Shown here in pieces: positions 630-31,617 of a stretch of 64,000 bases of DNA. The stretch is taken from positions 124,001 to 188,000 of IMG/VR virus record IMGVR_UViG_3300031521_001337; one strand, 5' to 3'. Under the pieces are notes generated by a model that ran no database searches, had not been told where the DNA came from, and worked only from the letters and a program-made list of their open reading frames with translations. How positions within the stretch are numbered: the first letter of the stretch is position 1; every line of letters starts with the position of its first letter. The translations under genes and the position numbers were made by a program.

Positions 630-632
630 ACG

Positions 633-887: not shown

Positions 888-898
888 AAAATAAAATT

Positions 899-1403: not shown

Positions 1404-1404
1404 A

Positions 1405-1551: not shown

Positions 1552-1553
1552 TA

Positions 1554-3500: not shown

Positions 3501-3506
3501 AATATT

Positions 3507-6421: not shown

Positions 6422-6459
6422 AAAATCCCCTAGCCTTAACGGTTAGGGGATTTTTTTTT
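6422..6459. terminator. Bidirectional terminator between convergent genes
   Basis: AAAATCCCCTAGCC-TTAAC-GGTTAGGGGATTTT with A- and T-runs on either side. Confidence 0.88.
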
Positions 6460-9400
6460 ACTTTCTATCAACAGTTGGTAAGATTTCCATCATATTTCAA
6501 TTACCTCTTAAAAACGTAACTAAATCAGATTTACCTGCAAGTACACTCTTAAAATCGGTCATAGTATTAGTCATAATTGAAGCAAAAGCTGGTTCTCAAC
6601 TTAATGCTCCAAATACACCACCAAATGGATCAAACTCCCCAAAACTCTTCATACCTACTTTAGTAGCTAGTTGTTCGTATTGAGACATTTCTTTCATTGG
6701 TTTCATACCATCTTCTCCTTTAGACATTAATATATGTCCTAATCAAATCATCATCATAGCGATTAATAAATCATGTAACGCAACTTTAGCATTAGCTAAT
6801 CTTTGAGGATCAGTATTCTTTAAATCACCAGTAGCAAGAGCTCTAATAGTTAAACCTAATGAATACATTAAACCTTCACTAGGAGAACCAATTCAAGCAT
6901 TAGCAGGAATAATAGGATCTTTAGAACCTAATTGATCTTTAGTTACTTCTTGCATTTCATAATTACCTTGTTCATCAATTACAGGTTTACCATTTTCATC
7001 AGTAGTCATTTTTTGATAATATAGAATTTTATTTCCATTATCATCAATTGTAAACTTTTGACCCATATAACCTCTAGGAGATTTTTGATCAGGTTTACCA
7101 AAATAATATTTAACTTTAGATGGTCAGAATGTTAAGAATTGTCCAAAAATAATACCCATTGCAGTATGTTTAATCAAAGGTGACATATCTTGATCATAAA
7201 ATCCATAAGCCATATCAGAAAAATTCTTAATACTACCACGTTCTTTAGATGTGTATGCTGATGGAATATTATCTTTTTCAGTTAAAAGTTTTTCACCAAA
7301 CGAAGAATTCTCACCATTAAACTCGTCAATTATAGTTAAATACAAACTACGTTGTTTATTGTATAATTCATCAGATGCATTATATTGATATCCATTAGCT
7401 TCGCGATTTTTAAAATAATGAGCATATCTTTTATCTTTAGAAGGATCATATTGTAGTTGTCCTTCTGAATTTAAACTATGTGCATCATAACAACCATCAT
7501 GAATCATTTTTGCAAATAATAAGGATAGTCGATTTACATAATCTGGTGCAGTATTGAATCAATACATATTTTCACCCAAGAAGTTAAATCCGAATTTATC
7601 AACTTTCTTTCTATCAACAATGTGATTTAAATCTTGATTAGCAAAACGCATTTCTAAGTTGATAGCTTCATTTAAGGCATATGTTTCTTTATTAGGATCT
7701 AATACTAATTTATAAGCTTTTGCAAGATGATCTCCATTAAAACTATCATCTCCATAAATTTTACTTCATGCATAAGATGTATTCTTAACTGTTCCAACAA
7801 GTAACTCTTTAATTAATAATGCAGGTCTTAATGAAATTGCCATTAAACTCGATATTTTTTGTACCTTTTTAATAACAGCTAATGCTTCTGCACCTTCTTT
7901 ATCAGCTACTAACGATTGACCATATACAGCAGTTTTCATTTGATTAAAGAAATCTTCAAGAGCTTCTGTAAGTTCTTTAGTCTTTCCTGAACTTCATCCG
8001 TGAAACTTCATTACTGTTAATGCAGAATGTATATTAGGAAGTACTGTATTAAAGTGTTTTTCTCTAATATTTTCAAAAGCATATTTTAAACCAATAACAT
8101 CTAAGTTTACTTCAAAAGCATTTACTCCATATTTTTCAATTAAACTTAATCTATAATTGTCATTAGTATTTTTAAATTGATTATACATACGTTTAAATCC
8201 ATTAACTGATTCATAAGATTCAACACGTTGTTCTTCTGTAATATCTCTAGGATCTAATAAACCTTTAGTATCATCTCAGAATTTACCAACAGTTTTTCTA
8301 AAACCATCTGTAGTAATTGATTTTCATTTACTTAAACTCATTTTCTTAACAAGTGGAGCTTTAAATAAATCAGATCCAATAGATGTTCATTCACTAAAGT
8401 TTTCGTGCTTTTTAAATTCTTCTAATGTTTCAATATTGTATTTATTTATAGGACTATATTTAAACATATTGAATACTACTGTTTCTAAATAAGCTCTTTG
8501 AGGATTATCAAGATTAGATTTAAGATCTCATGGATTTTTAAATCTAAAATCATTATCAATAACACCATTATGTTGTTCAAAGAAAACTTTGTGATATTGA
8601 TCAGCATCTCCAATAATTATTTTTTGAAGAGTAGAACGACCTATTGCTTCATAGTATTTATTAGTTGCACTTACAATTGAAGCAGATTCTTTATTAAATT
8701 CAGAAGCAATTTTGTTATGTGCAATGGTAATCATACCGTGTAAACGAGTCATAGCTTGTGATTGTAGAGCATCGGCAGTATTGAAATGTTGACCTTGAAA
8801 TAAACCTACAATCTTATTACCATTCTTATCATATTCTGGAGATGTTCCCATAACCATAGTTCTAATTCAATCAGTAGCATCACCAATTCTAATTCCATAT
8901 CTAGGAGTTGCATAATCAAATGTATCATTTAAATTAGTGTAATATGATACACCTAATGATACAAGATAGTATATATAATTCAAAGGGTCTGAGAAATCTT
9001 GAATTTCAGTTTGGTCTTTATTTTGAAGACTGTTTCCATATTTATCAAGAAGTTCATTTCTAAACTTTAAAAACCATTGTAATTTATCATTAGCTGTAGA
9101 CATTTCTTCATCATCTTGACGATATGAAGCAATTGTTGTTTTTAACGCAGAATTATCAATATTACCAGCTTTAGATAAAATTTCACCTCATATGGTTTTC
9201 ATCATATCAGATGCTTTTAAATTTCCTGTTTTAAAATTGTTTTTAAAATCAGATTTAACTTTTACAATTTCATCACCTAATAAATTAAAATTATGAATAG
9301 CTTTATCAATTGGAATAAAATCCGCTTTATCACTGAATCAGTTATATACAGATACATTATTAATTGTTGAACCTTTTAAGTTATCAGTTAAAGCATTTAA

Positions 9401-11128
9401 TACTGTCAAAGCTTTCATTATTTCAATATTAGCTGTACTTGCTGTAAGTATTCTACTATCATTAGCTAATGATTTATTAGGTTTAAATTTACCTAAAATA
9501 GTATTACCTCTAGTAAATTCATTAACTTGATCTAAAGCATTAATAGTAATTGCAATAGCTTCTACACTTCGAGTATTAATGTTTCTAAATAATAATACAC
9601 CAGCATGAGATAATTCAGGAATTGAATTTTCATCATTTACTATTTCCCATTCAGGTGTTAAATATTTATTAAGTACTCTTTGCATTTGAATTGGAGCTTC
9701 CTTACCATTAATAAGAATTCCATGTTCTTTATTTTTAGCAGCTTTAAATGACTTAACAAGGTCATTCATTTTACTATCTTTAGCATTAGTCCATTTTGTT
9801 ACATAATCTTCAACTTTAGCTTGAAATCTTTCTTCCCAACCTAGTTTAGTTTTATCTTCTTCAATCCTTTCAGTATTTAAATTATTTACAATATAAATCT
9901 TAGCTTGACCTTCTGAACGAGCAATAGCCTCTTTAACTAAATTTTCAACAGATTTACCTTTTGTTTTAGTTTTATAATCATAAGCAGGAAATGCAATCTT
10001 ACAAGTATCAACAATTTCAGAATCTAAATCAGTAGTAGATAAATGATCCCTTTTGATTTTAGAAGGAATAAGAGTTCTTAAATCATTACTCATATTACCT
10101 GAATTATATTCTAATCCTGATGATGAATTTGATCTGTCTGAAATTTCTTCTAATGTAATAGCGTTAGGATTTATTTCAATATTATTACCTTTTTTAGGAA
10201 CAATTAATTGTAGTATATTTAAAGAAGATTGAGCTGTATCAACATAACTATCTAACAACTGACGTTTTATTCCTAAAATATAATCAGTTTCTAATTTCTT
10301 AGATGAATCCCAATCAGAATATTTATTTCTTGAAACTTTAATTTCATATAAATTAGGAATTCCTTTATCATCAATTTCTAATACATGAATATTTCCATTC
10401 ATATGATTAGCAGTACTGTTTACAGATTGACCTATTTTAATAATACTATTAGACGATTGCATTTTTCTACCTCAAACAATTAAATCATTTTTAAGTGTAG
10501 CAATCGCTATTTTGTAATTGTCTAAATTAAATTCTTTTTTCTCAAAGTTAGACGTTCCATCTAATTTATCAAATTCTTTAGATGCAAATTGATTATAATT
10601 ATGAATCTCTTTCATAAGATTCTCTAAATACATATCAATATCTTTATCCTTATATAATTTACCAGCATCAGATAAAGCCAATCTTACAAGATTAGAACCA
10701 ATTTTACTCATTTCCATCATTCTATTATCAAGAGATAAATTTAAATTAACTCTTGCCATTAGAACAGCAGCAGATTCATTAGGATATTTAACTTTTAATA
10801 AAGCTAATTGATTCTTTTTAAAATTTGCTTCAATAAATTCGGGGGAGAGTAATTTCTCTTCCCCGTTTATATTATGTGTAAGTTTTATAAAACTATAAGG
10901 TGTTAATCCATCAGATACTTTAGGATCGATATTTGATTTTGCTGTATTATCTTCTAACACATTTAAAGTTAAGTCTTGTAAAGATTGGGTTAGTGTATCT
11001 TCAGATCTACTGTGTTTTACACCCACTTCTTTATCCAGATTGTTCTTAACAAAATCTGTTAGTTCTTTATCCGAATTAAAAGTTGCATTAAATCCGTCTA
11101 TATTTAAATAGTATTTACATTTATCCAT
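6458..11128 (-). CDS. Giant virion-associated protein D (1556 aa with TGA=Trp), possible degenerate PD-(D/E)xK domain near the N-terminus
   Basis: Track fragments 10472, 9338, 8867, 8528, 7994 and 7124 are in one frame, joined by TGA only. Starts MDKC, ends TAA at 6458. Confidence 0.85.
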
Positions 11129-11139
11129 TTTATTTTATT

Positions 11140-14100
11140 TTAATAACTGCAATCTTGTATCAGTTGATCATTTTTTATTAATTGTTTTATCTTTCCTGAT
11201 ACATTAAACATTTCAAATGCGTTTGTAGTATCAATTAATCCATCTTCTGCACCTATTAATTTAGAACCAAACTGAGTCATTATACTATCAATTGGTTGAC
11301 CTAATAAATCTATTGAATCTTCTCATTTTAAATCAGCATCTAAATTTAATAAATCAGATATTGATTTTTTAATAGATTCATTAAATACTTTCTCAGTAAA
11401 TAATTCATCAGGTTTAATATTGCTTTTAACTGTCATTGTTAATAATTTAACAAAAGTTTCCTCTAATTTATCAGCATTTATATCTCCATTATAACTCTTA
11501 GATATTTCTGAAAACATAGGATGATATTGTACTGAATTCACAATTCTATAATAAGAATCAGAATCATTACTTTTCATTGTAGCTAATACTAAATGTAGAA
11601 TCTCGTGTAATGGTTCTTCCATTCCAGCTTTATCAACATTTACATAAACTCCACCTTCATAAACAAATGCCGCAGAATTATTTACATCTAAATGTGTAAA
11701 GTCTTTTAAATCATCATTTGTAATAATATTGATCGGAACTCCGAATTTATTTTGAAGAACATCAATCATAGCGTTAACTATTTCAACTGAATCAGATTTA
11801 CTGTAAGCAGTAACATATGAACTCTTAGAAGGATTACTTTGAGTAACAACATCTTTAACTTTTTCAAAATTATCGGTTGCTCATTTTGGTAAAAACAATT
11901 GTTTTATATTAGTAGCATCTACTCCAATAAAAAATCGTTCTGCTTTAACATGATTTATTTTACTATCGTCTCCAACATTAGGAATATTTGAATAATGATA
12001 TGCAGAAACTAATAGTTTATCTCCAATCATTTTCTCAACAATAAAAGGTTTAGCGTTTCCTTCTACAAGTAAATAAGAACCTGGAACTATATATTGAAAT
12101 ACTTTATCAAAACTTGTATTATCCAATGCAATTTTTACTGTATTAAAATCATCTTTTAATATACCTTTTTGTCCATTAATAGGATTACCTTCATACATAT
12201 AAAGTTTATCGGGAATTGAATTTCATTTATAGCGTTCAGCTAAAGACTCTTTATATTTCTGTGTAATATCTATATCAGATGATTCGTATTTAGATTCAGA
12301 TATAGGTCTACTATAAACATAACCTGTTTTACTTTGATAAACTTTAACTTCTTGACTATTAGTATTAGTTATATTAGGAGTGTTTCCAAGTTTAAATCTG
12401 TTTTTAATTATTCAACCTTGAGCAAAAGATTCATTTTGTGATTTATTACTCAATAATAAATATCTTGATAAATTTAAATCTGATGTAGCTACATCAATAT
12501 AACGATTAACTCCTCCAAACTCAGATGATGTTTTAATATGATCATAAGCTGATTCAAGTACTTTTAATACATTACCAGTTGAAGTATCATATATAAAATC
12601 ATCTTTATTAATTGTAGATTGACTATTAATTTGCTCTATAGAAAATTCTGAATTTTTAAAAGCTCCATGATTATTTTTCTTTGGACTAAGAAATATTTCT
12701 TGCATGTTATCTAATATCTTACCATTTGAATCTGTTTTAAACACATCACTAATTGATTGTTTAACACTAACCTTTTCAGTAGCTGATATAACATGATCAA
12801 TACTTGGAGAAGTTACATATTTAATACTATTTTCCATAACATATTTTACAGTATTGTTCTTAGTTAAATAATATACAATTTTCTTATCTCCTGCATCAGA
12901 TTGACTAGTACCATGAGCTAATACAATAGCATCAACAAGTTTATCATCTTCTTTAACAAGAACGTGTGCACCATTCATTACTCCAAATTGTACAGGTTGT
13001 CAAGCATCATTATTTTCAATTTCTGAAATCGTATGACTTTTAAATGTATTTGTATCAACATCTGTTCCGATTGAAAAGTTTTTAATATCACTTACTGGAA
13101 CTTGTTCTCCATTAACAGTTAACATAGAACCATTTATTTCAGAAATTTCTCTATACGTTTTACTTCTTCCAACTTTTACTTTAACTCTACCAGATTTAAT
13201 TAAATCAAGCATAGTACCTCACTTAACTTTACTAAATTTATTTATAGATAATTCAGATTCAGTTTTACTTGATTTGTATACAGGTTTAATTGTAGTATCA
13301 TCAACTTTTCTAGAATATATATAATCTGATTTAAGTAATGATTTACGTGTTGTTAATCCATCCCCACCTGAAATTGTAGTAATAACTTTATTACCATCAG
13401 TATCTACTTTATAATCAAAAAAGATTTCATAAATAGTTTTATCTCCAAATTTAACTCCAATTAAATCACCTTGTCTAAGATTTTTAATTAGAGTTTTTTC
13501 AGCAGGTTGATAATAATAATCACGATTTTCTTTTAATACTTTAGTTTCAAAGTTAGATTTTATAGTGTAAGCTGAATCTCTTGTATTTATTAAATCTGAT
13601 ACACCGTTAACATCTATAGTATTTTTATAAGATGCTTCATTATAAACAAATAATAATTTACTAAGTAATTTAGATTTATCTCCAAATCCTGGATTAATTA
13701 TATTATTTAATATCTCAGTTCTTTGTGCATCAGTACCAGTTCTAAGAGTTTCAGAGTTTTTAATGTAATTATCATTATCGTATAAATTTAATGCCAACTC
13801 AGTTAAAGCCATTATCTTATTTTGTTCATCATAAGCATAATTTAGATTTAAAAATATATGACCTTTATGAAATTGAGTTTTTACGTTTTCATTTGCAATT
13901 CCAGCAATAACCATTTTAGAGGTCCATGATGGTTTAGGAATATTAAGTCCTTGCATTAATTTAATTACATTCTTATCTTTAATCAACTCCGCAGGGCTGT
14001 AAAGCCCCACGGAATTTTCATTAATGTTTGTAAGTTCAATATTCTCAATTGAATCAAATTGTGGAAGCATTTCCATAATTGATTTAAGTTCATCCAAACT

Positions 14101-14208
14101 TCTACCTGATAATAATTTTTTAATTTCATTAATATCAGTAACAGGTTTTTCAACTGAACCTAAATTATATTTCTTACCTCCAACGTTAAGTATTATTTCA
14201 CAACTCAT
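11140..14208 (-). CDS. Virion-associated protein C with zincin-like metallopeptidase domain (1022 aa with TGA=Trp)
   Basis: Fragments 13219, 13000, 12412, 11881 and 11323 are in frame; PLHEILHLVL (HExxH) plus downstream EE. Starts MSC, ends IQDCSY-TAA. Confidence 0.85.
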
Positions 14209-17200
14209 TATTTATTACATTTAGTTTCTAATACACCATTTATAGATGTTAGACTATTTAAAATTTGTTTTTCTAAATTCTTTCTTTCCTCACTAGCAAT
14301 TTCAGATTCATCTAAAGAGTCTAATAAAGTATAATATCTATTCTTAACAGAATCAACAATATCAACTGGATTTTCAATATCAGACATATCTTGAGATCTA
14401 GCTACAGATTTTTGTTCTAAATCTCTCTTTCCAAATATCTGTAAATATAATACATGTCTAAAATCTTTATCAGTTTTAATTCTATCCATTAATTTTGGGA
14501 TTAGATTTTTATCTAAGTCCATCATCCTTTGGAATTCTACGAATTTTCTTGAGAAAGTGTTAGGATTTTCCATATCTTGTGAGAAAAATATAGTTGCTCT
14601 ATTTCCACCAAATCGTCCTTCGTTGACTAAATGATTATACAAATATAGTAAATCTAAAGCTCTAATATTCTCAGAATTGTACTTATTTGATCCAGGATCA
14701 GTCTGAGATACTTTGATATTTAAATTATATTTATCATCACGATTTTCATTAAATAAATTGAGACCATGTTGAATCTTAGTCATTATTTTATGATTTGATT
14801 TATCATCATAGAATTTAATCTGACGTTGCATATTGAATATTTTATTGTTTCCAAACTTATAATCTTTTAAGAAGTTATTACTCTTAAATTTAGATTTAAG
14901 TGAATTAATTAAATAATTCTCCATAATATATTTGTATTGTGCTAATCCAAATTCAGTTCCAAGATCAATAATTCTATAAGGAGTATTTAAAGATTCTTCT
15001 TTAGTATCAGGATCTGTACTTAATTTAATTTCAGAAGTACTAATCCTTTGTTTATCAGGATCGAGTATATTCATCTCTTTTATATTTAAGTATTTCATGA
15101 TTTGAACAATGTCTAATTGTAAATTTAAATTTTTAAGCCATTCTTGTGATACATAATTATCATAAGCATCACCTGCTCCAGATAGTACTTTTTCTCTAAG
15201 TTGTACAGAATTATCGATATTTGACATTGCTCTTGTTTGTTTAACAATATCTTTATGGTCTAATTCACCATTATCTCTACCTATATCAACTAAAGCATGA
15301 GTAAAATCAGTAACGAAAGCATATTTATTAATATCAGTTCTCATTGTTTTTTCACTATAATTAAATGATTTCAACATTCCATTAAAGTGAGGTAACTTAT
15401 TTACAACATCTAATACATTGAATGTATATTTCAATAAATTATAATAACCTGTAACAGCTTCAAAATATCTTGGTTCTGTTGTAATAGGATGATCCATACT
15501 TTCGTAATAACGATTGATATCAACTCCACCAAATACAATTCCAGCTAATACAGCATCAGATAATCTTCCTTTAATATAACCTTCTGATAAATGAGGTTTG
15601 TCAGTTTTAATTATTCTAACTAACTCAGGTAATAAAGTTTTATTAAATTCTTTAAGTATTAAAGTTTGTTCAGATGAAGATGCTTCATTTCATTGTTTTT
15701 TAACATTATTTAAATCCGTTTTAACTTCTTCAAATATTGTATTTTGTTGAGATGTAACAACTGAATTAATTTTTCTAACAATATTATATATATCAATTTC
15801 AGAAGCTTTAATACCTTGATTAGCAGATAGTAATCCACCCAAAGTTTTAAGTTCTTTAGAATAGTTATAAATTTTAATAAACTCATCAAAATAAGCTTTA
15901 TTAATTCCAGCTTTAGCAGGATTAAGTTTTCCTAATTGTGCATCAATTGATGAACTTTTACCAGATTTAAAGAAGTCTTCTTGTAAAGCAGCTTTAATTT
16001 TTAACGCATCATCACTAGTCATAAATTTACCAATAAGTGCTTCATCCATTCCTAATACTAACATATAAATATGCATTGAAGCAAAATCTATACCAGCATT
16101 AATTTTAGCTAACATTAACTCTTTAGCATTATCAGTTGCAAGAGATAATAAAGCAGATATATTTAAAGCCGGATCATTTTCATCAAGAACTTTAGATAAC
16201 TCTAATTTCTCTTCATCGTTAAATAAAGATCCATCTTTCTTAGTTAGATTAACTTCTTTAAGATTTTTATATACAATATCTTCTAAAGTTTTAGTTGCTT
16301 TTTCTGTTAAGTTTAATCCTCCAATCTTTTTAAGATTGTAGTTCTTACCTAAAATATGAAAGTTTCTACTAAAGAATTCATTATCTTCTGATGTTACTTC
16401 ACCATTATAATAATTAGAATAATATGTAACTAAAGCAAAATAATCTTTAAGTCCTGTAGCAGCAGCTCCAATTACTTTTTTACCTACAGCATTTTGTTCT
16501 TGTTGTAAGAATGTTGTATGACCATCATAATTACTTAAAGCATAAGAACCATCAATTTTCTTACCAATTTCTGTATACTTACCAAATGAGATTGGAGAAT
16601 AAGATGCAACTTGATTTCTAGGACTAGTACTTAATGCAATTAACTTATTAACTACAAAGTTTTTAAATCCATTTTCATTATTGTATTTATTATGTTTAGA
16701 TAATTGTTTAATAAATTTATCAGCAATTAAATCATTTTCACTATCAATATATTTAATTTCAGGATGATCTTTCAAATAGTTATAAATATCAGCTCTTTCT
16801 TTTAATCTAAATGGATTCATGGTTGTAGGAATAACAAATGTTTCGCCTTCAAACTTTCCTCTAGTATATTCCTTTCCATTAGGTGCAGGAAGTCTTAAAG
16901 AATCTCTAACGTTATCATCAGATGAGAAATCAAAGAATGGTGATCATTTTTCAAAAGAACCATTTCTATAATCATACATCATCATATAAACTTTATCAAT
17001 ATCAAAGTCAGAACCTTGTAACCATAATTGTCAGTGAGATACAAATGCATTATTCAAGTGTTCTTGAGTATATGCTACAGTATTCATAGACATAAATGAT
17101 TGATAAGCTTGTGCAGGAATACGAGCACTTAATGATAGATTAGACATTTTCCATGAATTAAACATAGTATTTTTCAAGTTAAACACATAACTGTCTTTAG

Positions 17201-20200: not shown

Positions 20201-23162
20201 GAATATATGCACCTTTAGTAGAAAGATTTTCATATTGACTTAATATTAAATTTCTAGACCACATATATTTTCTACCTAATTCAGATAGTTCAGTACCATC
20301 AGCATTATTCAATTTAAGATTACTAACTGATATTCTTTTACCATCTTCCATATTATAATCAAAAATATCATCAACATCTATATTAAAATGTTTAGCTATT
20401 TGTTCAGCAATGTGTTCAGATTTAACATGATAAGTTCCTTCGAATTTAGTATTTAATTTGATTTCTTTTGGAGAAATATGTGTATTTTCTAATGTTCAAG
20501 AAGCTAAACTTCCTTCCATATTTTTACTCCATTCATTAAATAATGATTGATCATTAAATATCATGAAATTAGTTTTAAGAGCTTGATTAATTTTCAAAGC
20601 CTTTTTACCATCAACTGAATATTCAGAATAATGTAAATCTCTAACTATTTCAGGATTTCTAAAATTATCATCATTACTATGATTATGTGTATAAGATCTT
20701 GTTAATTTTTCAATAGCTTTAACACTAGTATTTTTTTCAAAGAATTCTTCAATTTGACTAATTTTATCTTTAGGATCACGTACTGTAGATAATGAAGATG
20801 AATTATCAATCAATAATAAATCAGCATGAATATTATTTATAACTGATGTATAATATTGTAATTGATTTTGTTTAAAGTGAGATTTTAATTCATCACTTGA
20901 TAATTTAGCTAGTGTTCCACCTAAGTTATCTGTAACATTTGAATTAATTTCTAAAGCTAATATCTTACCTTTATCAGAAAAATTCCAAGGTTGAATAAAC
21001 ATTCTATCTTCATTAATACTTGACATTAAGAAATTTCTAGTAAATGCAAGTTTAAATAAATCTTTTGAATTTAATTCATCAATTGATTTAGCTTCATTTT
21101 TACCAACTACTTCACTTATAATAGCAGTACCTTTTATTAGATTAGGATTTTGTTTAAAGAAAGTATTAGCATTTGCTTTAGCTAATAATCTTCCAGTTAA
21201 TGCTCCAACATAAGCAATTGACATAGTTGGTCATGAATCACCTTCCGAACTTTTAACTTGTGTTACAACGTTATATTTTTCTTCTTGATGTCTTAATTTA
21301 AATAACTTTTTAAAGTCAAATTCTTTAGATACATTATCTTCTTGTAGTTTAGCTATAATTTCATCATTAGTTAATACTCTATCAGCTAAAGAGACATCTT
21401 CATTCATAACTTTAATATCTTTCATTAAAAGATTTTCTAATGATTTTCTAGTATTAGCTGTTAATGGATCTGATTCAGATTTAGTAGAACCTAAAAATGA
21501 TTCTTTACTTTCTTTAGATAACTGTATATCAGCATATTTATCAATAAATGCAAATACTCCACCATAAGTAGAAAAATCAGCATCTCTAAATATAGTAGAA
21601 TCTGTTTTAAGTTTTTGCTTATAAGAAACTGTATTATTTACAAGTTGTTTGAAATCCACACCTACTTTAGTATCCATATGTAGATTGTCAACAGTTGTAC
21701 CATTTCCTTCTACATCTTCCGATCTATATGTATTTTTAACTGTATTTCTTATAGCGTGAATTAATATTTGTTCAATATCAATTGGTTTATCAGATATACC
21801 GATATTAGTTGCTTTCCATTCATTAAATAATCCCACAACTCCAGTATCTCTATGATATAAGAAATCATGAATACTATACATATAATTTTTAATGATACTT
21901 AAATCATCATATTTATCAGATTCATTTACTAAAGCTTTTAATATTGTTCTGAATGGTATATCGTTATTATCACGTTCATGTCTTTCAAATGCTTCATCAA
22001 CTGTTAGTTTTGAACCTTTAATATTAAGTGTTAAGTCTTGAGGTAATGAATTCATTACTGCTCCAATAACATTAACACTAGTTGTTCCTAATGTAATACG
22101 ATTATTTCCAAATAAATATCCTGAAGTTTTATCTCCATTTGATTCTTCAGATTCTTCAATTACATTGTGTTGTTTGAATGGGATGATATTAGAAAGTAAT
22201 TTAAATAAACTTGAAGTATGATGTGATACATCAGTTCCTTCTATTGAATCAGAAGCTCATGTTGAAGTAGATGCTCCTTTAAATTTTAATGTATATTTAA
22301 ATTCACTATTAGAAGGAGGTGCATATGTATTCATCCCATCCGGATTTACATTTATTACATCTCCATGTTTTTCTGACATTAATTTATCAAAATTTGTAAG
22401 AATCAACATTCTTATATATCCTGATGTAGTTGAAATACCTTTAGTATCAATACTATATTTATCTAAAGCTTCAAATTTAGTTGTTACTGATTCTAATACT
22501 TTAGAATATGGTGTTTTACCATCTGTATCTGGAAAAAATAAATCAGGATTCAATCTAAATGCACGAGATCCAGTAGAATCTTTATCTGTATTATACAGAT
22601 TAGAATCTTTTACTTCAGTTACTCCTGAAACTTTAGTTAGATATTTTCAAATATCATTCTTATAAACAAAGATATTATGTTCCAATGCTAAATCAGATAC
22701 TACAAAGTTATTAAATCCGTTATCCCTGTTATCGTTATTAACGAATGAAACAGCATACATAGCGTACTCTAATTCAGAATCTAAAAAATTTTCAAGTGAT
22801 TTATCATGTTTTAATAGTTTTGCTATATTTGAAGCATCTATTAAAGTTGGATTAGTTGATAACGATCCAGATGTTTTAGATAGTCCATATCTAACTTGAG
22901 ATATAATCTCATTAATATTATCAGAAGTTAAGTTAGGTTTGTTTAACTTTGACATTGATAAATATAACGAATTGAAATCATACACCCGTGCTTCAGGAGA
23001 TTCTTCTATTCCCTTTAATATAAAATCTGACGCAGCAGATATTTCTTCATTTAATTTTTCATTATCTACTAAATCAGAACCGAAAATACCAAGGGGTTCT
23101 ATCCCCTTGGCACCATTCAGTTTCTTGATTATTGCTTTAAAATTTTGTGAACATTTACTCAT
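14208..23162 (-). CDS. Single-chain virion DNA-dependent RNA polymerase, crAss type (2984 aa with TGA=Trp)
   Basis: Ten track fragments are in one frame. The catalytic region SARIPAQ...QLWLQGSDFDIDK (DxDxD loop at 16992-17015) lies in a TGA-bounded stretch absent from the track. Starts MSKC, ends ETKCNK-TAA. Confidence 0.92.
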
Positions 23163-23169
23163 TTTTTAT

Positions 23170-26100
23170 TTAAAATTTACAATTGTATTGGTTATTATCA
23201 TTTAATCCACTTAATACTAGATTTTTGATTAATGAATTGTTTTTATTAAGTTGAACATTTTTATCAGGACCTAATTCAAATAATGAACTTAGGGCACTAG
23301 TTATATTTAATCCGTCCATCTTTAACACTCCATTTTCAACATCTAAATCATCATAATTTTGATCAATAAATCCATTTATTATTTTGCTTACTACAGCTTT
23401 ACTTTTTTCAACATCTTTTGCTTTGTCAAACAAATTACCAAGTGGAACTCCAAATGTATTACCTTCAAAATCAAATGATATGTGATTTGGTATTTCTACT
23501 CCAACTAATGTTGGTTCAGTTTTTACATTATTAGTATTTACTTCGTTTCCACCAATCTTACTTAATATTTTATCCATATTTAACATAATTTGATTAGGTT
23601 CAACAGGATATTGCATTTCATAATTATTATTAGTAGATACTGGTAATTTACCTTCAAATTCACCACTAACAGCAGGAGAATCAATAATAGTATTGTAATA
23701 GATAGGTTTGTCATAAGTTTGAACAAAACTATTAAATCTAGTTACAGTATCTTCGTATTGAGATTTACCTTCTGTCATTATATTATGTATAACATATAAA
23801 GGATTTGGAATTTTAACAGGTATAACATCTCTAAATCTATTTCCGATTATGGATTTTAATTTAGGATTTTCTAATAAATCATCAAAAGTTTTTTGAGTTG
23901 ATGCATCATTGTTTATAAATCGCCCTAAATCCATTAAAGTTTCTACAATATGAAATGATTCTAAATCATTCTTAGATAAATAATTTTTCCAAGAAATATG
24001 ATTAACCATATCATCAATAATAGTATCAATGTTTTTACCAGCAACTTGTTCAGATTTTAAGAAATCATAGAATACTTTCCATCCAGTATATTTAGACATT
24101 AATGCTAATTTTTTATATTTAGCATCTACATCTGTTTCATGGTCAGCAAGATGTTCTTGATTTTTTAATTTCTTATCAGCTTTAAGTTCTGTATCAGCTG
24201 TAGTTATTTGTGTTCAAGCTTCACTTAAAGTTCTACTTTTAGCATTTAATACAACTAATTTAGAATATTTAATATTTCCTTTAACATATTCAATAGTAAC
24301 ATAAGGTCTATAAGCATATCGGTTGTAATATTCTTCCGAGTTTCTTAATGTGAATTCATCATTAGTTTCATTCTTACCTTGAGTATTATAAGGAGTTTGT
24401 CTGTATTCTTCCATTGTTTTTTTAATATATTTAAGATAATCTCCATTTTGTAATACACCATGTGCATCATATTTTGGACCTCTAAATACTTTAATCTCAC
24501 TAATGAAAGCTCCTGGAAATTTAGCTTTTAAATCTTTTACAGTTATAGCAGAATCCTTTTTAAAGGCATCTTTTTGAGCATCATTCATAGTTGGAACTTG
24601 AACTCCCATATATGTTTTAATATCAGCACTATCAACTGTAATATCTCCTTTACTTGCTAAATCATATAACTTAGAAAGTTTTTCGAAATCAACATTAGCT
24701 TTAACAGCAGGATTTGAAATATCAGGCAATGCTGAAAGAGTTATAAAATGATTTGCACCACCAATTTCAACATTCATTCCAAGAACATAAATATCTTTAC
24801 CTTTTAAAGCATTACTATTTACTAGTTTACCATAAGGATCAGTATACTCTCCACTTTTAAGTTTTCTTATTACTAAATCTTTTTGTTTAGTATCATTATT
24901 AAATAATCTAAAATCATCAGGTCTAGTATAAATTGTGTTATCAATTGTAGAAAATAATACTAAATTTTTCCATTTAATATAATCGCCAACAACATCTCTA
25001 ACACTTTGATCAGATATATTTACTAATCTAAGAATTGAACCTAAATCAGTTCCAGTACTATTCTTTATTAAGTCATCAATATCAATATCAGATCCAATTA
25101 TTTTATCTAAGTTATTAGAAATATCATGAATTCCAATATTATTAAAGAATGAATATCCTAATATATTACTAGGATCTTTAGTTTGAACAGTAGTAGAAAT
25201 TGGAGTAATTATTTCAGGGTCTGAAGTTTCTTTCCAATCGGTATTAAATTTCTCATTTACAACTTTAACATCTTTATGTTTTATAGGATCAGATTGTTTA
25301 TAATCCTTTGTCATATCTGATAATTCATCAATTCTCTTAGTTAAGAAATCTTTAGCTCTATCGTTATCAAATACTTTTTCTTCTGTACTTAATGACATTT
25401 CTGTTTTAATTCCAAAATTATCTAATAGAGTTTTAGAACCAACAATTAAAGTTCCAATTTTAGATCTAGTAACAAGAGTATATAAACTACGTATAGTATC
25501 AAAATCAGAATCAGATATTTTAATTGGATCAAGAATTACTACTTGATCAAATTCTTCACCTTGTACATTTTTAGAATAAACTTTAATGTCAGCAGATTGA
25601 ATACCTAAAGTACTTGTAATTAAAGATTGTGTTGAATCAGATAATTTACCACTATCAGTTAAGAACACAATTTCTTTAGAAGTATCTAATTTTAAAAGAT
25701 CAGCTTTTGTAAGATTATCTACAAACTTATCTCCATTTAAAAATGTTTTATCATAATAAACTAAAGTAGGTCTATATTTAATAGGTTCTTTCAAATATGA
25801 ATCTCTATAAATAGCATCTGTAAAATTCTCCATAAGAATACAATTATCATTATGGTGTACATTCTTAGATCTAATTGTACTTTTAAGTTTAATAGATCTA
25901 GGAGTAGATATATTCTGTGTAGAAAATGATGTAGTACCAATTTTACTTCCATTTTGTAAATTATCACCCATTGCAATAACATAGTAGTTATTGTTTTTAG
26001 CTAGATAATTAAACATTTGCCATTCAAGTGTAGATAATTGACTCATCTCATCAATCATTACAATTTTAGAACCTTCAATATTATGACCTAAGAATACAGA

Positions 26101-29100
26101 ATCTAACCATTTTTCATTTATAGCAACTGCACCATCTCCTTCACCTTTTATAAAAATCTCAGGATTTAAATCATCATATTTATCTTGTTCTATTAAATTT
26201 AATTGTTCCATGTATTCATCATACTTAGAACCAATCATTGTTTTAATGTAGTCTTTAATTAAGTCTTCTTTTATTTCAACAGATACCTGATTCTTTAAAT
26301 TCTCTTTTAATCCAGTAAGTGTTTTAGGTGTTGGTGCTAAAGCATGAATAGAAATATTTTCACTCGGAACTTTAGAATCAATTATCATTCTTAAAGGAAA
26401 GTTTCCTAAAATTGTAGTTTTACCTGTTCCAGCAGAGCCAAGAACATTAAATACATATCCAATAGAGAAACTTCTAGATTGATCAATAGCTTGTTTATAG
26501 GCTTCTTTTTCAGTAATTGTAGTACCTGCATCTTTTGCATCAGCAAGTATAGAATTCTTTAAAGTATAAATACTAGGTTGTACAAACTCTATAGAATGAG
26601 CCATTATATCTTTTCCTAATCTACCATTAAAATAAGCTTGTTCTTGTCTTTGTACAAATTGTTGTACAAAAAATGGAGCTTTTACTTCCGACAAAGATAC
26701 TTCATTTTCTAGTAACTTTTTATAGTTTAGATAAAAATCTTTACTACTAAGAGCCAGTACAGAATGTAAATAAAAATATCAATCTTTTTTCTCAAGTTGA
26801 GTCAAATCCTTTGTCAGATTAGAATCCTTACCATCAATAATTGACTTGATAATATTTTCAGAATTATCATTGCCTTTAAACGGAGCAAAAACTTCATCTA
26901 ATTTGTCTGTCAAGTTTCCTTCAGCATTATGAAAATTAGTATAAATTCTATGTTCAAATTCAGCAAGTTTACTTTCAGCTAAAACTATTTTATTAATAGC
27001 ATCAAGATCATTTTGATTTATTAAAGTTCTTCCATTCACAGTTAGTTTACCTGCTGAAATTTCAGAACCATCAGTCATTCTTTTTAAAATAGAACTAACT
27101 AATGCTGTTTTGATTAAATTATGTTCTTCAATTAAAGATCCAGAGTTTCTTTCTGCAAGAGTTTTAAAATAGTTTAATTTATCTGAAATGAAAGTTAAAT
27201 CATCATTTATGATCTTAGCTGACGTACTATCAACCAATCCAAATTTTCCACTAACTTCTTCGAACTTTTCAGCAGCCATATTTAATGAAACATTATAACC
27301 ATACAAATCACCACCTAATCCTACTTCTGTAGAAGTCATTGCTGAAATTACAGAACGTACAGCAGTTATTGTAGATAAAGCTTTATTTAATTGATCAATT
27401 TGAACATTATTTCTAATAAATTGAGACGGTGCTACAATATTATCAAATAAATCATAATTATCTCTTAATAGTTTAAAGAATGAAATAGGACCTGTTTTAC
27501 CTCATAGATTTATCTGAAACTCATTCAACTTGTCCAAAAACGTATTCATTTTACGTTTATTGTATTTAAGAATTTCATGAATGTTTAAATAGTCTTTATA
27601 TCCACGATCAATTAAAGCTTTACCTAATTCTGAATTTTCATCGAATTCAAAATTATCTAAATCAGGAATTAATGCAGAAAGAGAACTATTTTGAATATTT
27701 ACTCTAATTTCATTAGCAGCATCTGTTAATTCTTTAACCGCTTCATTATCTAAATCTTCACCTCTAGCAATTACATTATTAGCATATTTAATTAATAAAG
27801 ATCTACGTGGTGAAATCTTATCATTGCCTTTTGTAAAAGTATAATAATCATCATCAGAATGTAGCGCTTCATTATAAACTTCTTCTAATTTAGGATCTGA
27901 ATTTCCTTGATTGATAGATATTTGATCCATTTTACTTTTAACAGTAGAATTGAATACATCTTGAATTTCAGTAAGTGTTACATCAGTTCCTTTATTTTGA
28001 ACATAAGTATCTAATGCTGTAACAATATCATGAGTAACTTCATCAGTATCTTTGTCAAATCAGTCTGCTAAAATTTGGTCAGCATCAGAAAAACTAATAA
28101 TTCCATCTTCATTAGTAACACTAGATAATTCATCTAATACTTTATTAGCTTCAACTAATAATTTAGATTTTATTAAATCTTTATTAACAGCTTTCTTTTC
28201 ATATCCATTAACGTGGATTGTTCCAATGTTCCCAATAGTTGTAATTTCACTATCTTTGGCTAAATGTTGCATTAGAACATCTTCTGTAGCTAAATCCGCA
28301 GATTGAGAAATTGTTTCTTTCTCACCCATGATTTGTTTTACTCGTCCATTTTTACTTCCGTTATAAGCATCAAATGCTTTTTGTATAATACCGTAATCTA
28401 ACTCTGTAGACGGAAGACCTAATGAATTTACAATAGCAAATAAATGTTCTTTATCTCCAGTACTTAAAGTATTAATATCCCTCTTTTGATTTAATTCTAC
28501 ATCAGCATTATTAATATCAGTATTAATTTCTTCTTGAAGTGGAGCAATTTTTTCATTTATTGTATTAATTTCATCTGGTTCTGTAACAGTAGATAATTGT
28601 TCTTCTAACTTATTTAATTCTTCAAGTTTAGGATTGATTAAAGCATCACGTCTGTTAATTATTTCAACTTTTTGTTCTTCTGGTAAACCAATTTGAATTA
28701 AATTCATATCGTTTAAGAAATGAGCAACATCAATATCAGTATCAGATGTAAGACTTGCAGTTCTAAAACCATTCTTATCTAATTCAGTATTTAATTGTTG
28801 TAATCATTGTCAGTTAGTATAAGCGTCAGTTAAACTTAAACCTTTACCTTTATTTCTAAAGTTAGCTAAGAATGAACTTCTAGTATTAGCATATCCATCA
28901 GCATTAAACTCTGCAATTGAATGTGAGAACTCTTCATTAATTTCCAAAAATCTATCAAACATTGATTTCATTTTGTTTTTAAAATCACCTTTACTTTCAT
29001 CAAATATATTATCAAATTCTGCTTTATAAGTTTTCTTTTCAGATTCACTAAGTGAATAGAAATCTTTATCATATTTATCTTTAACATAATCGTCAACAGA

Positions 29101-31617
29101 TAAAGAAATAAATGGTGCGTGTAAATTTTTATTTAATGTAAATAGTGATAACTTATGATAGTATTCAGCCTTTTCACCTTTTAATAATTCTTCAACTAAC
29201 TTTCTTTTTTCATTAAGTTTAGATTGAATATCACCTTTACCTACTTCATTTTTATTTACACTTTTATCATCTTTTTCAGTTTGTACATTTTCTAATTGAG
29301 TAGTAAGATCTACAATATCTCCAATTAATTGAGTAAAATCTGATTTTACAAAAGAATCAGTTCCGTTTTTCTTTAAATCAGCAATTCTAATATCATCAAC
29401 AATTGCTTTTCTAATAACAGATTCATCATCTTCTTTTATGTTTTCAAGATTTAAAATTCTATCAGCATTTTGAATATATGCTTTAGTAGCATTAGCAATA
29501 ACATCAGCTTGACTCATTCCACTATCACCATCTTTAGCTAGATAAATTTGTTTACCATCTACATTAGTTGTAACTGGAGATAAATCAGTACTTCCAAATC
29601 TACTTTTTTGTTTATCAATTTCTTTATATAAATCTTCTGCTTGACCATTAGCTACAAGTTGAAGTACATTATATTTTGTTTCTTGTTCAATACCGTGTCC
29701 AGATAAAATAGGTGATATAACTGAATGTTCTAATTCAAACATAGGTCCTCCAACCATACCTCCAACTAAGTTAGATACATAACGTTCAAATCCTGATTTA
29801 CTAAATACATTATCAAATCCTCCAAATGAACCTTGTTTCTTAGTAAATCCACAAGCACTCATAATATCAACAATACCTTTAGCTGCATCAGAAGCAAGTT
29901 CTTCTGAAACTTCTTCAATACCTTCAATCATTGATACTTTAAATAATTTTTCAGCTAATTGACTTTCTCCAATAGGTTGTGTAATTAAATTTTGAAATCC
30001 TTGTTTAGCTTTTGAAAATACATTCCCCAATGCTTTTTTACCAGCAATTTTATCTGTTGCAAGTAAATTAACAGCTTCTTGTGTTTCACCCATTAATTCA
30101 CGAGTAACACTTCTAATTCCAGCTTTATTAACTTCTTCAGTATAACCTGTAGATTTATCTAAAAACCAGTGACCTAAATTATTATTCTTCATTAAAGCAT
30201 ATTGACCTGATGCGGCTAATAATGCAGCAAAACCTGCTGTTCTATTATCATATCCTCCAGCTTTAGCATCACCATAAACATCAGCAGATTGCGTCATAGC
30301 CATGTAACCTAAGTTTAATGTTTCAGCTAATTGTGATCGTTTATGATTTATAGATTCAAGTGTTCCAATTTTATCGTAGGCAACTTGAGCAAGACGTTCG
30401 TAGTTTTCTTTACTTCTAGTTATACCTTTTACAGCATCACCAATAGCAACATCTTGAAGAATATCTTCAGTTTGATTAGCTAATTTTGCTAAATATTCAG
30501 TCTCATGTGACTTATAAAATAAATTAGACAAACTACCAGCAGCACGTTGTTCATAGATTTGTGAAAAAGTATCTGCAACCATACTTCCCATTTGTTCATA
30601 ATTCCACATAGATTGTGAACCCGCATCTGAAATACTTCTAACATCATATTTAGAAAGATATCCTTGTGCAGTATTCATTGCTTTCCATAGTGATGTTTCA
30701 TTACCTTTTTCAGTATCACCTGTAAATAATGCTTCTGCGGCTTTATAAAAAGTTGGAAGTACAGTAGCTAAACCTAATGCCATTTTCATTCCACCATAAT
30801 ATACATTAACTCCAGGAATTAAATAAGGTGCAACTTGTGTAGCAAGTTTCATAGTAGTCCCAAATACAGATTTATCTTTACCATCAGAATCAAAGAAATC
30901 TACTTTATTTAATTTAGAACCATCAACAGTAATTAAATCCATAGGATTTACTATTTGTTTACCATATACTTCACGTTTACCAAGTGTTTCAATATAAAGA
31001 TTTCCATCTTTATCATATTTCCAATCACCTTTTTTATGATTTACATGTCTTTTTGTCATAGGATCTATATCAGCACCATCTTCATCCCACTGAGCATAAA
31101 CCATTGTAGGTCCCACTAAAGAACCCATTAAACCCATGTCATTAGCTGATTTATCTAATCATTGTTTAGATTCAGAATCATATACTTTTGATTGTTGAGC
31201 TAATTCTCTTAAAGATAAATCAGATACATCAATACTATTTATTCCAGTTTTACTATATAATTGTTTAAACGGATTATAATCCTTAGTTATAACTGGAGCT
31301 ACATCTGCACGTAATGCTCCTTTTGGAGCAGTAAAATCTGTTGGATCATATTCTAACGCTTTAGCTAAAGCTTTATCATTTCCTAGGTCATTATACAACG
31401 ACGCAGCTTTTTGATAAGCTGCGTTGAAGGTTTTGTCATCGAATTTACCAGATGCATCTTTAAACATCGATTGAACTTTATCTAATTTTTTATAATCGTC
31501 CATAGGTAATAGTTGAGTATTACTTGGAACAACATTAGAACTAGCTAAATCGAATAAATTTAAATCTGGTTTCTGCACTAATGCAGAAAATATATCATTT
31601 GGTTTTGTAATTTCCAT
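23170..31617 (-). CDS. Giant virion-associated protein A with SF1 (RecD/Dda-like) helicase domain (2815 aa with TGA=Trp)
   Basis: Seven fragments in frame; GSAGTGKTT (26413-26439), MIDEMSQ, GDNLQ, QGEEFDQV, LYTLVTRSK. Ends QYNCKF-TAA. Confidence 0.85.

Follow-up and report, generated by a model that had tools for sequence, protein, structure and literature searches.

The analysed window is a 64,000-nucleotide stretch of IMG/VR virus record IMGVR_UViG_3300031521_001337 (positions 124,001 to 188,000 of that record). Four consecutive minus-strand genes, here called A, B, C and D, lie at 6458-31617 (Table 1). Only TAA and TAG close long frames on the minus strand of 6458-31629, and reading TGA as sense gives four stop-to-stop frames of 2820, 2986, 1024 and 1559 codons. 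The four genes contain 41 in-frame TGA codons. In relatives that use TGA as a stop, the aligned residue is mostly Trp (9 of 37), then Tyr or Phe (8 of 37). TGA is read as Trp here. We found no suppressor tRNA in the window.

Table 1. Features of the window; coordinates are those of the 64,000-nucleotide stretch, and genes A to D are translated with TGA as Trp.
Position	Strand	Feature	Description and basis
93-629		Ligase	Early nucleotide-metabolism block
633..887	+	Thioredoxin gene	Early nucleotide-metabolism block; thioredoxin at 633-884, Pfam PF00085, 4e-14
3997-5127		ThyX-like gene	Early nucleotide-metabolism block
6458..11128	-	Gene D	1556 aa, 177 kDa; starts MDKCKYYLNIDG (M1, C4, Y6, N9 and G12 invariant in relatives); ends PTVDRK, no C-terminal Cys
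11117..11119	-	Cys4 codon of D	TGT; protein starts MDKC
11140..14208	-	Gene C	1022 aa, 115 kDa; start overlaps the stop of B (TAATG); zincin-like HEILH motif at aa 868
11149..11151	-	Cys1020 codon of C	TGC; protein ends IQDCSY
14200..14202	-	Cys3 codon of C	TGT; protein starts MSC
14208..23162	-	Gene B	2984 aa, 340 kDa; virion RNA polymerase homologue by its catalytic block
14217..14219	-	Cys2982 codon of B	TGT; third residue from the end (ETKCNK), in a predicted unstructured 11-residue tail after the last helix; invariant alignment column
16995..17009	-	DFDID (DFDxD) motif of B	aa 2052-2056; catalytic metal-binding motif by alignment to GSDFDIDKMY of phi14:2 gp077 (PDB 6VR4) and to cr1_1 and cr50_1
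23151..23153	-	Cys4 codon of B	TGT; protein starts MSKC
23170..31617	-	Gene A	2815 aa, 316 kDa; no N-terminal Cys
23179..23181	-	Cys2813 codon of A	TGT; third residue from the C-terminus (QYNCKF)
25447..26454	-	SF1 (RecD/UvrD-like) helicase domain in A	About aa 1722-2057; Pfam AAA_30 (3e-10), AAA_19 and UvrD_C_2; Walker A GSAGTGKT at aa 1727
31626..33479	-	617-aa ORF	No Cys; second cargo-like protein, directly before A
33479..37387	-	1302-aa ORF	No Cys; by position, between the muzzle-like gene and A, the likely counterpart of crAss001 cargo proteins gp45/gp46
40421..44680	-	1419-aa ORF	Muzzle-like; ends TISYA, resembling the C-termini (YRYSMI and similar) of the stabilization/muzzle proteins annotated in cr10_1, cr109_1 and cr118_1; marks the start of the cargo block
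54083..55513	-	Major capsid protein, Crassvirus type	Pfam PF23898 Crass_capsid, 8e-13, above the cutoff; 50% identical to MT835470 and MT835492

The window belongs to a divergent crAss-like phage. This is evident from the major capsid protein, and the late block has the order seen in the annotated genomes of crAss001, cr10_1, cr50_1 and cr111_1: a muzzle/stabilization protein, small cargo proteins, then giant RNA polymerase (RNAP)-associated proteins, although the muzzle assignment rests only on a similar C-terminal motif. Residues 2010-2066 of B, which include RIPAQ and GSDFDIDKVY, align with residues 1318-1375 of the phi14:2 virion RNA polymerase (gp66, GenBank gp077; PDB 6VR4, 'DNA-dependent RNA polymerase') and with cr1_1 and cr50_1. 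BLAST aligned only about 60 residues (E about 1e-3 in a small database), not the whole fold with its two double-psi beta-barrel domains, and Pfam and PHROGs returned no hit on the pieces of B. A, C and D gave no BLAST hit to crAss001, DAC15 or phi14:2 proteins; what they share with the crAss001 cargo proteins gp47 and gp49 is only position, size, cysteine depletion, the terminal cysteine pattern and a zincin-like HExxH (in C here, in gp47 in crAss001).

Cysteine is scarce in the four proteins, and it is not randomly placed. There are 11 Cys in 8377 residues (0.13%): residues 589, 1926 and 2813 of A; 4, 1113 and 2982 of B; 3 and 1020 of C; and 4, 376 and 1213 of D. Six of the 11 lie at exactly the six ends that face each other in gene order. 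The exact probability that 11 randomly placed cysteines would hit all six 4-residue facing windows is 3.9e-15, and only 0.03 Cys are expected in those 24 positions. By contrast, other ORFs in the same and related loci have a Cys in residues 2-6 in 4.4% of cases and in the last 11 residues in 10.2% (n=225). The initial annotation had counted 11 cysteines by eye, six of them at the facing ends and none at the two outer ends, and this observation proved to be exact.

We next asked whether the pattern extends beyond this locus, conservation in homologues and dependence on gene order having been named beforehand as points on which the idea could fail. We examined 24 genomes, covering the window's clade (including three relatives here labelled L004, L079 and L080, with MT835470 and MT835492), Steigviridae (crAss001, DAC15, phi14:2, cr111_1, cr116_1), Intestiviridae (p-crAssphage, crAss002, cr8_1, cr271_1, cr11_1), Suoliviridae (cr50_1, cr1_1, cr7_1, cr60_1, cr109_1, cr118_1, cr10_1) and Flavobacterium phage Fpv1. 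Across 40 junctions, 80 of 80 facing termini carry a Cys, at residue 3-6 of N-termini and within the last 1-11 residues of C-termini, whereas 0 of 41 observed outer termini do (Fisher 3e-33). Apparent exceptions were group I introns or gene-calling errors, apart from one fragment described below. Some Intestiviridae cargo proteins outside the chain (p-crAssphage gp47 and gp48, crAss002 gp30, cr8_1 gp90) also carry terminal Cys, without an identified partner.

The terminal cysteine is often the only one in a huge protein. crAss001 gp47 has 1 Cys in 2341 aa and gp49 has 1 in 1349 aa; phi14:2 gp078 has 1 in 1797 aa; Fpv1 gp33 has 1 in 4401 aa. The phi14:2 RNA polymerase has only Cys3 and Cys2179, the latter its next-to-last residue, and three B homologues of over 3000 aa each (P0126, P0128 and P0130) have exactly two, one at each end. 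Over the 19 genomes tallied for composition, Cys makes up 0.15% of the cargo residues, against 0.94% in neighbouring ORFs.

The cysteine pairs follow gene architecture. A fusion of A with B (Suoliviridae, Fpv1) or of B with the next protein (Intestiviridae) removes exactly the pair at that joint. Conversely, MT835492 splits A in two and has a new pair at the split (EACKVIA at the C-terminus of one part, MQSNC at the N-terminus of the next), giving five proteins and four pairs. The order of modules in the fusions equals the order implied by the Cys positions. Gene adjacency, however, is not required: in crAss001, DAC15 and cr116_1 the first protein is encoded on the opposite strand and still keeps its C-terminal Cys. 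This corrects the initial annotation, which had tied the pattern to gene adjacency.

Selection acts on the amino acid. The residues flanking the cysteines vary, and the ratio of TGT to TGC is 55:7 at the termini against 115:16 internally. Among 23 B C-terminal domains with 20% mean column identity, the terminal Cys is one of five invariant columns. Of 32 representatives clustered at 50% identity, 29 end in Cys; two of the three exceptions were TGA miscalls, and the third, a 136-aa fragment (P0171), stands unresolved. Moreover, 119 of 120 gp49 homologues have Cys5. An AF2 model of the C-terminal piece of B (mean pLDDT 82.8) places the Cys in an unstructured tail after the last helix (465-482 of the piece). 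The corresponding model of the N-terminus of D is of low confidence (pLDDT 53).

Comparison thus strongly supports the view that the six cysteines are selected features that work as C-terminus/N-terminus pairs between consecutive cargo proteins. We propose that the RNAP-associated cargo proteins of this phage, and of crAss-like phages in general, are joined end to end after translation, the Cys near the C-terminus of one protein bonding, most likely as a disulfide, to the Cys near the N-terminus of the next. In the window this would give one unbranched chain A-B-C-D of about 949 kDa, in crAss001 a chain gp47-gp50-gp49, and in general a linear chain of about 0.7-1 MDa. Such a chain would behave like the single fused polyprotein that other lineages encode directly, and would guarantee 1:1 stoichiometry. 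Because the links sit at the extreme ends and run C-terminus to N-terminus, the partly unfolded cargo could leave through the portal and tail channel as one thread of constant polarity, each protein drawing in the next. The links would then be reduced, or simply tolerated, in the host cytoplasm, where the RNA polymerase starts early transcription.

We consider this reading somewhat more likely than not. Our data establish where the cysteines are, that they are conserved, that they covary with fusion and fission, that other Cys are generally depleted, and that a confident model has a flexible C-terminal tail; the disulfide chemistry, the identity of the partners (assigned by parsimony) and the role in packaging and ejection are inferences, as are the presence of B in virions of this uncultured phage and its activity at the start of infection, which rest on what is known of phi14:2 and crAss001. 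There is no direct chemical evidence of a cross-link in any crAss-like virion, only the indirect evidence of the pairing logic and the flexible tail, and the cargo was not resolved by cryo-EM. The hosts of the gut phages are strict anaerobes with a reducing cytoplasm, which leaves when and how a disulfide would form unexplained, and recombinant phi14:2 RNA polymerase is active on its own. The initial annotation had inferred that the four chains are linked A-B-C-D by disulfides or a metal clasp, to be packaged in fixed ratio or threaded out as one string and then released in the reducing cytoplasm. That interpretation is partly supported: the pairing is borne out by comparison, but a disulfide rather than a metal or some other contact, ejection as one string and release by reduction remain inferences.

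Other readings are less likely. The cysteines could be functional sites that each bind something other than the neighbouring cargo protein, such as the portal, the inner capsid surface, cargo proteins 1 and 2, or a second copy of the same protein, and so act as packaging anchors. crAss001 virions do use inter-protein disulfides elsewhere (in the tail hubs, the ring proteins and the gp57 dimer), the extra terminal Cys of Intestiviridae could be of this kind, and about six copies of each RNAP-associated protein per capsid are thought possible. However, this unlikely alternative does not explain why N-terminal and C-terminal Cys numbers are always equal, why the observed outer ends lack them, or why a fusion removes both Cys at a joint and a split creates both. 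It is also possible, though again unlikely, that the termini meet as proposed but are held by a shared metal ion in a zinc-clasp-like site, or that the cysteines only stabilize a non-covalent strand-to-hairpin docking. The anaerobic hosts favour this, and the termini at the B/C and C/D joints look like a β-strand (G-x-L-x-x-x-C) meeting a conserved N-terminal hairpin (C-x-Y-x-L-x-I-N-G). Yet there is only one Cys per terminus, with no conserved His, Asp or second Cys nearby to complete a metal site; the variable distance of the Cys from the C-terminus suits a flexible tether better than a fixed metal site; and disulfides are documented in crAss001 virions.

Two further schemes appear improbable. 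Proteins with a Cys at both ends (B and C) might close on themselves while the first and last proteins pair with each other, which also satisfies the parity of N-terminal and C-terminal Cys. Every fusion or fission would then orphan two Cys with different former partners and force rewiring, whereas under the chain model each event adds or removes one partner pair; moreover, circular 3000-residue proteins would have to pass the tail channel as doubled strands. Alternatively, the cysteines might serve a processing or ligation chemistry, such as a thioester-based transpeptidation that makes a true peptide bond, or recognition by the zincin-like protease domain that these proteins carry. An HExxH motif is indeed present in C, in crAss001 gp47 and in p-crAssphage gp45, and Drobysheva et al. 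suggest polyprotein cleavage in the fused forms. Against this, no conserved motif surrounds the Cys, we found no intein or transpeptidase domain in the terminal pieces, and virion mass spectrometry of crAss001 lists gp47, gp49 and gp50 as separate proteins at their predicted masses. Split inteins are specifically excluded by position, because Cys so close to the facing ends leave no room for intein halves (about 100 aa at the C-end of the first protein and about 35 aa at the N-end of the second, with Cys1 and Cys+1), and Pfam found no intein domain in the pieces scanned (C-terminal for A and B, N-terminal for C and D). Nor are these the lipobox cysteines of bacterial lipoproteins, which lie in an L-x-x-C that follows a signal peptide of about 15-25 residues; here the Cys is at residue 3-6, directly after the initiator Met. 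Chance, or a nucleotide-level signal in which TGT near stop and start codons forms part of a ribosome-binding or coupling element, is effectively refuted. The partner codons in the window do lie within about 30 nt of each other, but in addition to the improbability of the window pattern, the pairs are conserved with partner genes on opposite strands, across gaps of -4 to +130 nt and in genomes using three genetic codes, and both Cys codons are used in the background ratio.

We found no paper that mentions the paired terminal cysteines. Among the closest described systems is the crAss001 capsid cargo (Bayfield et al. 2023, PMC10172136). It has the same gene block after the muzzle and two small cargo proteins, although with three giant proteins rather than four. 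gp47, gp49 and gp50 are found in virions, are thought to be stored in the capsid and must partly unfold to exit, and gp45 is proposed to exit N to C. We find the same terminal Cys in them (gp47 ending RCNS, gp50 starting MSKRC and ending CGANTLYEL, gp49 starting MAKKC). That paper reports disulfides only in the tail and in gp57, and does not contain the word cysteine. The phi14:2 RNA polymerase (Drobysheva et al. 2021) also sits between two other virion proteins, but it has 2180 aa against 2984 aa in B, only the catalytic block is alignable, and it was studied as a tagged recombinant monomer; the preprint mentions neither cysteine nor disulfide. Fused RNAP polyproteins, which were noted by Drobysheva et al., comprise the same modules in the same order (Suoliviridae A+B, up to 5443 aa; Intestiviridae RNAP plus next protein, 4070-4620 aa). 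Their continuity is a peptide bond made by the ribosome, which the proposed chain would imitate, and the Cys pair is kept only at the remaining split.

In N4-like phages (Schitoviridae) a giant polymerase is likewise packed in the capsid and expelled through the tail (PMC11445570, PMC13434306). N4 uses one 3500-residue chain of a different polymerase family. The ejection proteins, including gp51 and gp52, are essentially Cys-free (0.00075%), a depletion explained by passage through the envelope, so that the retained terminal Cys of the crAss-like cargo stand out. The T7 gp14/gp15/gp16 and P22 gp7/gp16/gp20 ejectosomes are also ejected in order through the tail, at least partly unfolded, but form a trans-envelope channel rather than deliver a polymerase, and no covalent links between their proteins are known. 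Inter-subunit covalent bonds that form after assembly do occur in phage particles, as in the crAss001 tail disulfides, siphovirus tail-ring disulfides (PMC13576161) and the HK97 chainmail. Those bonds stabilize static shells or tubes, whereas here the bonds would join mobile cargo head to tail and would probably have to be undone or tolerated after delivery.

The initial annotation also suggested, speculatively, that the phage thioredoxin could be involved. The gene is real, but the idea has no support beyond its presence, and no evidence links it to the cargo cysteines. Here and in p-crAssphage, cr8_1 and cr111_1 the thioredoxin lies among nucleotide-metabolism genes (ThyX, dUTPase, ligase), which suggests an ordinary role.

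On the minus strand between 6458 and 31629 only TAA and TAG terminate long frames. Reading TGA as sense merges 26 standard-code ORFs into four stop-to-stop frames of 2820, 2986, 1024 and 1559 codons. TGA codons align preferentially with Trp (9 of 37), then with Tyr or Phe (8), in relatives that use TGA as a stop, so the reading of TGA as Trp in the initial annotation is right. The recoding is concentrated in the late minus-strand block, with 41 in-frame TGA codons in the four giant genes. Close relatives use three codes: TGA as Trp (the window and the related loci L004, L079 and L080), the standard code (MT835470) and TAG as Gln (MT835492). No tRNA gene, suppressor or otherwise, lies in the window to explain the recoding. 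Translations in codes 4 and 15 were used only for counting and local alignment.

The four encoded proteins, A to D, hold exactly 11 Cys in 8,377 residues (0.13%), and six of these lie at the six facing ends, as verified codon by codon. The exact probability that 11 randomly placed Cys hit all six 4-residue windows is 3.9e-15. The observation made in the initial annotation is thus confirmed.

Coordinates of the features described in the window and in related genomes
Genome	Feature	Coordinates	Strand	Length	Details
Window	Gene A	31617..23170	minus	2815 aa	No N-terminal Cys; ends ...QYNCKF
Window	Gene B	23162..14208	minus	2984 aa	Starts MSKC; ends ...ETKCNK
Window	Gene C	14208..11140	minus	1022 aa	Starts MSC; ends ...IQDCSY
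Window	Gene D	11128..6458	minus	1556 aa	Starts MDKC; no C-terminal Cys
Window	SF1 (RecD/UvrD-like) helicase domain in A	25447-26454	minus		
Window	Two consecutive ORFs directly upstream of A	31626-37387	minus	1302 and 617 aa	No cysteine in either
Window	DUF192 (COG1430) protein	37763-38341	minus		Pfam 3e-24; no Cys; inside the cargo block
Window	Likely homing endonuclease	38558-39205	minus	215 aa	18 Cys in six CxxC pairs; HNH-like end; inside the late block
Window	Likely homing endonuclease	52169-53062	minus	297 aa	PHROG 314 (1e-27) and NUMOD1; inside the late block
Window	Thioredoxin	633-884			Among ligase and ThyX-like genes
Window	Early genes	93-5127	plus		0 or 1 in-frame TGA each
MT835470	Group-I-intron-like insert with endonuclease ORF, in the virion RNA polymerase gene	11963-13003			Rfam RF00028 at 23 and 21 bits, below the gathering score; directly at the DFDxD catalytic codons
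cr116_1	Group-I-intron-like insert with endonuclease ORF, in the virion RNA polymerase gene	14589-15461			Rfam RF00028 at 34.7 and 32.3 bits, below the gathering score
crAss002 (NC_055828)	Start region of annotated gp33	12088-12186			Annotated start probably 32 codons too far upstream
cr10_1 (MT774382)	Unannotated gp49-like ORF after the fused polymerase	21739-25357		At least 1200 codons	Starts MKIICPNL...; runs to the end of the linear record

The window carries a Crassvirus-type major capsid protein (Pfam Crass_capsid, 8e-13). Protein B contains the block ...RIPAQ...GSDFDIDKVY, which aligns to the catalytic block of phi14:2 gp077 and of Suoliviridae polymerases; gp077 is the crystallised virion RNA polymerase (PDB 6VR4). 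Because A carries a helicase domain, a helicase would be packaged and injected with the polymerase, and the fused Suoliviridae homologues are annotated 'DNA helicase' or 'exonuclease V' for the same reason. C carries a conserved zincin-like HExxH motif. Upstream of A lie a muzzle-like gene and two Cys-free ORFs, which sit where crAss001 has cargo proteins gp45 and gp46; by analogy, their lack of cysteine fits ejected cargo proteins. PHROGs and Pfam searches of ten standard-code pieces of A, B and C returned nothing except the helicase domain in A, and the pieces of D also returned nothing. A tblastn search of GenBank phages with the C-terminal piece of B found no match.

The pattern is conserved in the window's own clade. 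A word-indexed search with the C-terminal piece of B found two relatives at 34% identity, which end ...NCN or ...NCK. L004, the 102-kb contig that encodes one of these two relatives, keeps the whole pattern: A' ends ...KTKCKI, B' runs MSNC...SVNCN, C' runs MAC...EQKCSY and D' starts MDKC. MT835470, which has a capsid protein 50% identical, has A ...SQNCKLNI, B MAC...RINC, C MSC...KENC and D MAC. In MT835492, A is split into two proteins and a new pair is present exactly at the new joint (...EACKVIA followed by MQSNC...), giving five proteins and four pairs. L079 and L080 both conform once TGA is read as Trp.

The same pattern is present in every family sampled. In crAss001, the first protein gp47 (2341 aa) has its sole Cys in its C-terminal ...RCNS, the RNA polymerase gp50 runs MSKRC...CGANTLYEL, and the next protein gp49 (1349 aa) has its sole Cys in MAKKC. 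In phi14:2, the sole Cys of gp078 is its last residue, the RNA polymerase has only Cys3 and Cys2179, and gp076 has only Cys3. DAC15, cr111_1 and cr116_1 behave the same way. Where modules are fused, only one pair remains, at the remaining split. This holds for the fusion of the RNA polymerase to the next module in Intestiviridae (p-crAssphage, crAss002, cr8_1, cr271_1 and cr11_1) and for the fusion of A to the RNA polymerase in Suoliviridae and Fpv1. Fpv1 gp33 has one Cys in 4,401 residues, at position -2, and gp34 starts MAC.

In total, across 24 genomes and 40 junctions, 80 of 80 facing termini have a Cys, whereas 0 of 41 observed outer termini have one (Fisher 3e-33). The N-terminal Cys sits at residue 3 (19 cases), 4 (6) or 5 (6), and once at 6; the C-terminal Cys sits 1 to 6 residues from the end, once at 9 and once at 11. 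By comparison, 225 neighbouring ORFs have a background of 4.4% for the N-terminal window and 10.2% for the C-terminal window, and contain 0.94% Cys against 0.15-0.2% in the giant proteins. Some other Intestiviridae cargo-block proteins also carry terminal Cys: p-crAssphage gp47 (sole Cys at 856 of 857) and gp48 (...RCGGHRR), crAss002 gp30 (...RCGGKKKIA) and cr8_1 gp90 (MTKKC...). No partner was identified for these, and there may be further links.

Wider sampling gave the same picture. An exhaustive HMMER search of 1.84 billion representatives with the C-terminal piece of B gave 32 hits that reach the C-terminal region. Of these, 29 end in Cys, mostly as ...C-x, and it is often their only Cys; three full-length homologues of more than 3,000 residues have exactly two Cys, one at each end. 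Two of the three exceptions (P0127 and P0146) proved to be standard-code miscalls of TGA-recoded genes, and the third, P0171, is a 136-aa fragment that stays unresolved. In a 23-sequence alignment with 20% mean column identity, the terminal Cys is one of five invariant columns. Of 120 gp49 homologues, 119 have Cys5, and it is the sole Cys in 117, although the word-indexed protein search with gp49 listed only relatives at 73-98% identity. All 52 crAss001-like IMG/VR loci keep the pattern, but the scan with crAss001 gp50 returned mostly relatives over 94% identical and is informative only for microdiversity.

The remaining apparent exceptions could be explained. MT835470 and cr116_1 have the polymerase in two ORFs without a proper pair at the break. 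In both, the break is a group-I-intron-like insert with an endonuclease ORF, placed in or near the catalytic block, and homologues align straight across it. In crAss002 gp33 the first Cys is at residue 35, but the annotated start is probably too early, because an internal Met-Ser-Cys matches the N-termini of p-crAssphage gp44 and cr271_1 gp48. Finally, cr10_1 seemed to lack both a C-terminal Cys and a next gene; the Cys is at -11, and the next gene is unannotated at the end of the record.

We consider pairing between consecutive proteins to be the best reading of these data. The numbers of N-terminal and C-terminal Cys are always equal; the first protein never has an N-terminal Cys and the last never has a C-terminal one; each fusion removes one C-terminal and one N-terminal Cys at that joint, and the one extra split adds both; and the module order in natural fusions is the order implied by the Cys. 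A model in which the cysteines form homodimers or act as anchors, or one in which the middle proteins close on themselves, needs extra assumptions for each of these points. Selection is on the residue and not on the DNA, as partners can be on opposite strands, flanking residues differ, and both Cys codons occur in the background ratio. We rejected a nucleotide-level motif on codon synonymy and non-adjacent partners, and rejected split inteins and a lipobox on geometry.

Structural predictions provide some hints. The AF2 model of the C-terminal 493 residues of B is confident (mean pLDDT 82.8) and ends with a helix (465-482) followed by an 11-residue unstructured tail that carries the Cys. The N-termini of C and D share a conserved C-x-Y-x-L-x-I-N-G pattern. 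A model of the N-terminal piece of D, built from a 4-sequence alignment, folds this as a β-hairpin directly after the Cys, but it is of low confidence (pLDDT 53) and we treat it as a lead only.

The interpretation offered in the initial annotation, that the four chains are linked in order by disulfides or a metal clasp, is partly supported. The positions and conservation of the cysteines are read directly from the sequences, and pairing between consecutive proteins is strongly supported by comparison; the disulfide chemistry and the role in packaging and ejection are inferred. Its suggestion that the phage thioredoxin could be involved is unsupported, although the thioredoxin itself is real. 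In the mechanism we propose, the links sit at the extreme ends and run C to N, so that the product would be an unbranched chain with uniform polarity, 949 kDa in the window. In crAss001 such a chain would join the C-terminal CNS of gp47 to CITTNSTIEELAAK of gp50, and the C-terminal ...ICGANTLYEL of gp50 to CAIIPQVR of gp49, with an expected mass of about 694 kDa (262.5 + 276.9 + 154.5). This fits published work on crAss001, in which gp47, gp49 and gp50 are capsid cargo, the tail constrictions force partial unfolding, gp45 is proposed to leave N to C, and disulfides exist in the virion. The chain would give fixed stoichiometry and let each protein pull the next, and reduction in the cytoplasm could release them, though the model does not explain when and how the bond would form in phages of anaerobes. 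N4-like phages solve the same task with one 3500-residue Cys-free chain, a precedent against which the retained terminal Cys are surprising.

A broader hypothesis, which the evidence permits but which we hold only tentatively, is that all crAss-like phages assemble their ejected RNA polymerase module into one linear, disulfide-stitched 'post-translational polyprotein' of 0.7-1 MDa that is threaded through the tail with a single polarity. In this view, reduction in the host cytoplasm would be the switch that frees, and perhaps activates, the polymerase, and gene fusion and Cys-pair linkage would be interchangeable evolutionary solutions to the same requirement.

The genes belong to a known system, and fused crassvirus polyproteins were noted earlier; the rule of terminal Cys pairs and the implied head-to-tail concatenation appear to be new. 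Full-text literature searches found no mention of these cysteines. The crAss001 atlas (PMC10172136) does not contain the word cysteine, the phi14:2 RNA polymerase preprint contains neither cysteine nor disulfide, and the PDB holds no gp47 or gp49 homologue. Crassviruses are the most abundant phages of the human gut, and how they deliver nearly a megadalton of protein with their DNA is an open question. A conserved, sequence-readable rule (one Cys pair per split joint, none at fused joints or outer ends) gives that question a concrete and directly testable hypothesis. The rule also helps to annotate these very divergent genes, to correct start codons, to recognise recoded stops and introns, and to define the order of cargo modules. 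If the chain model is right, it would be the first case known to us in which phage ejection proteins are covalently joined head to tail, and it would explain why lineages switch freely between fused and split polymerase genes.

A single-protein scan of IMG/VR returned only three identical contigs; the same sequence occurs on contigs of 213,486, 112,425 and 51,867 bp. The 213-kb contig is about twice the size of the 102-122 kb relatives (the L004 contig, MT835470 and MT835492), so it may be a concatemer or misassembly.
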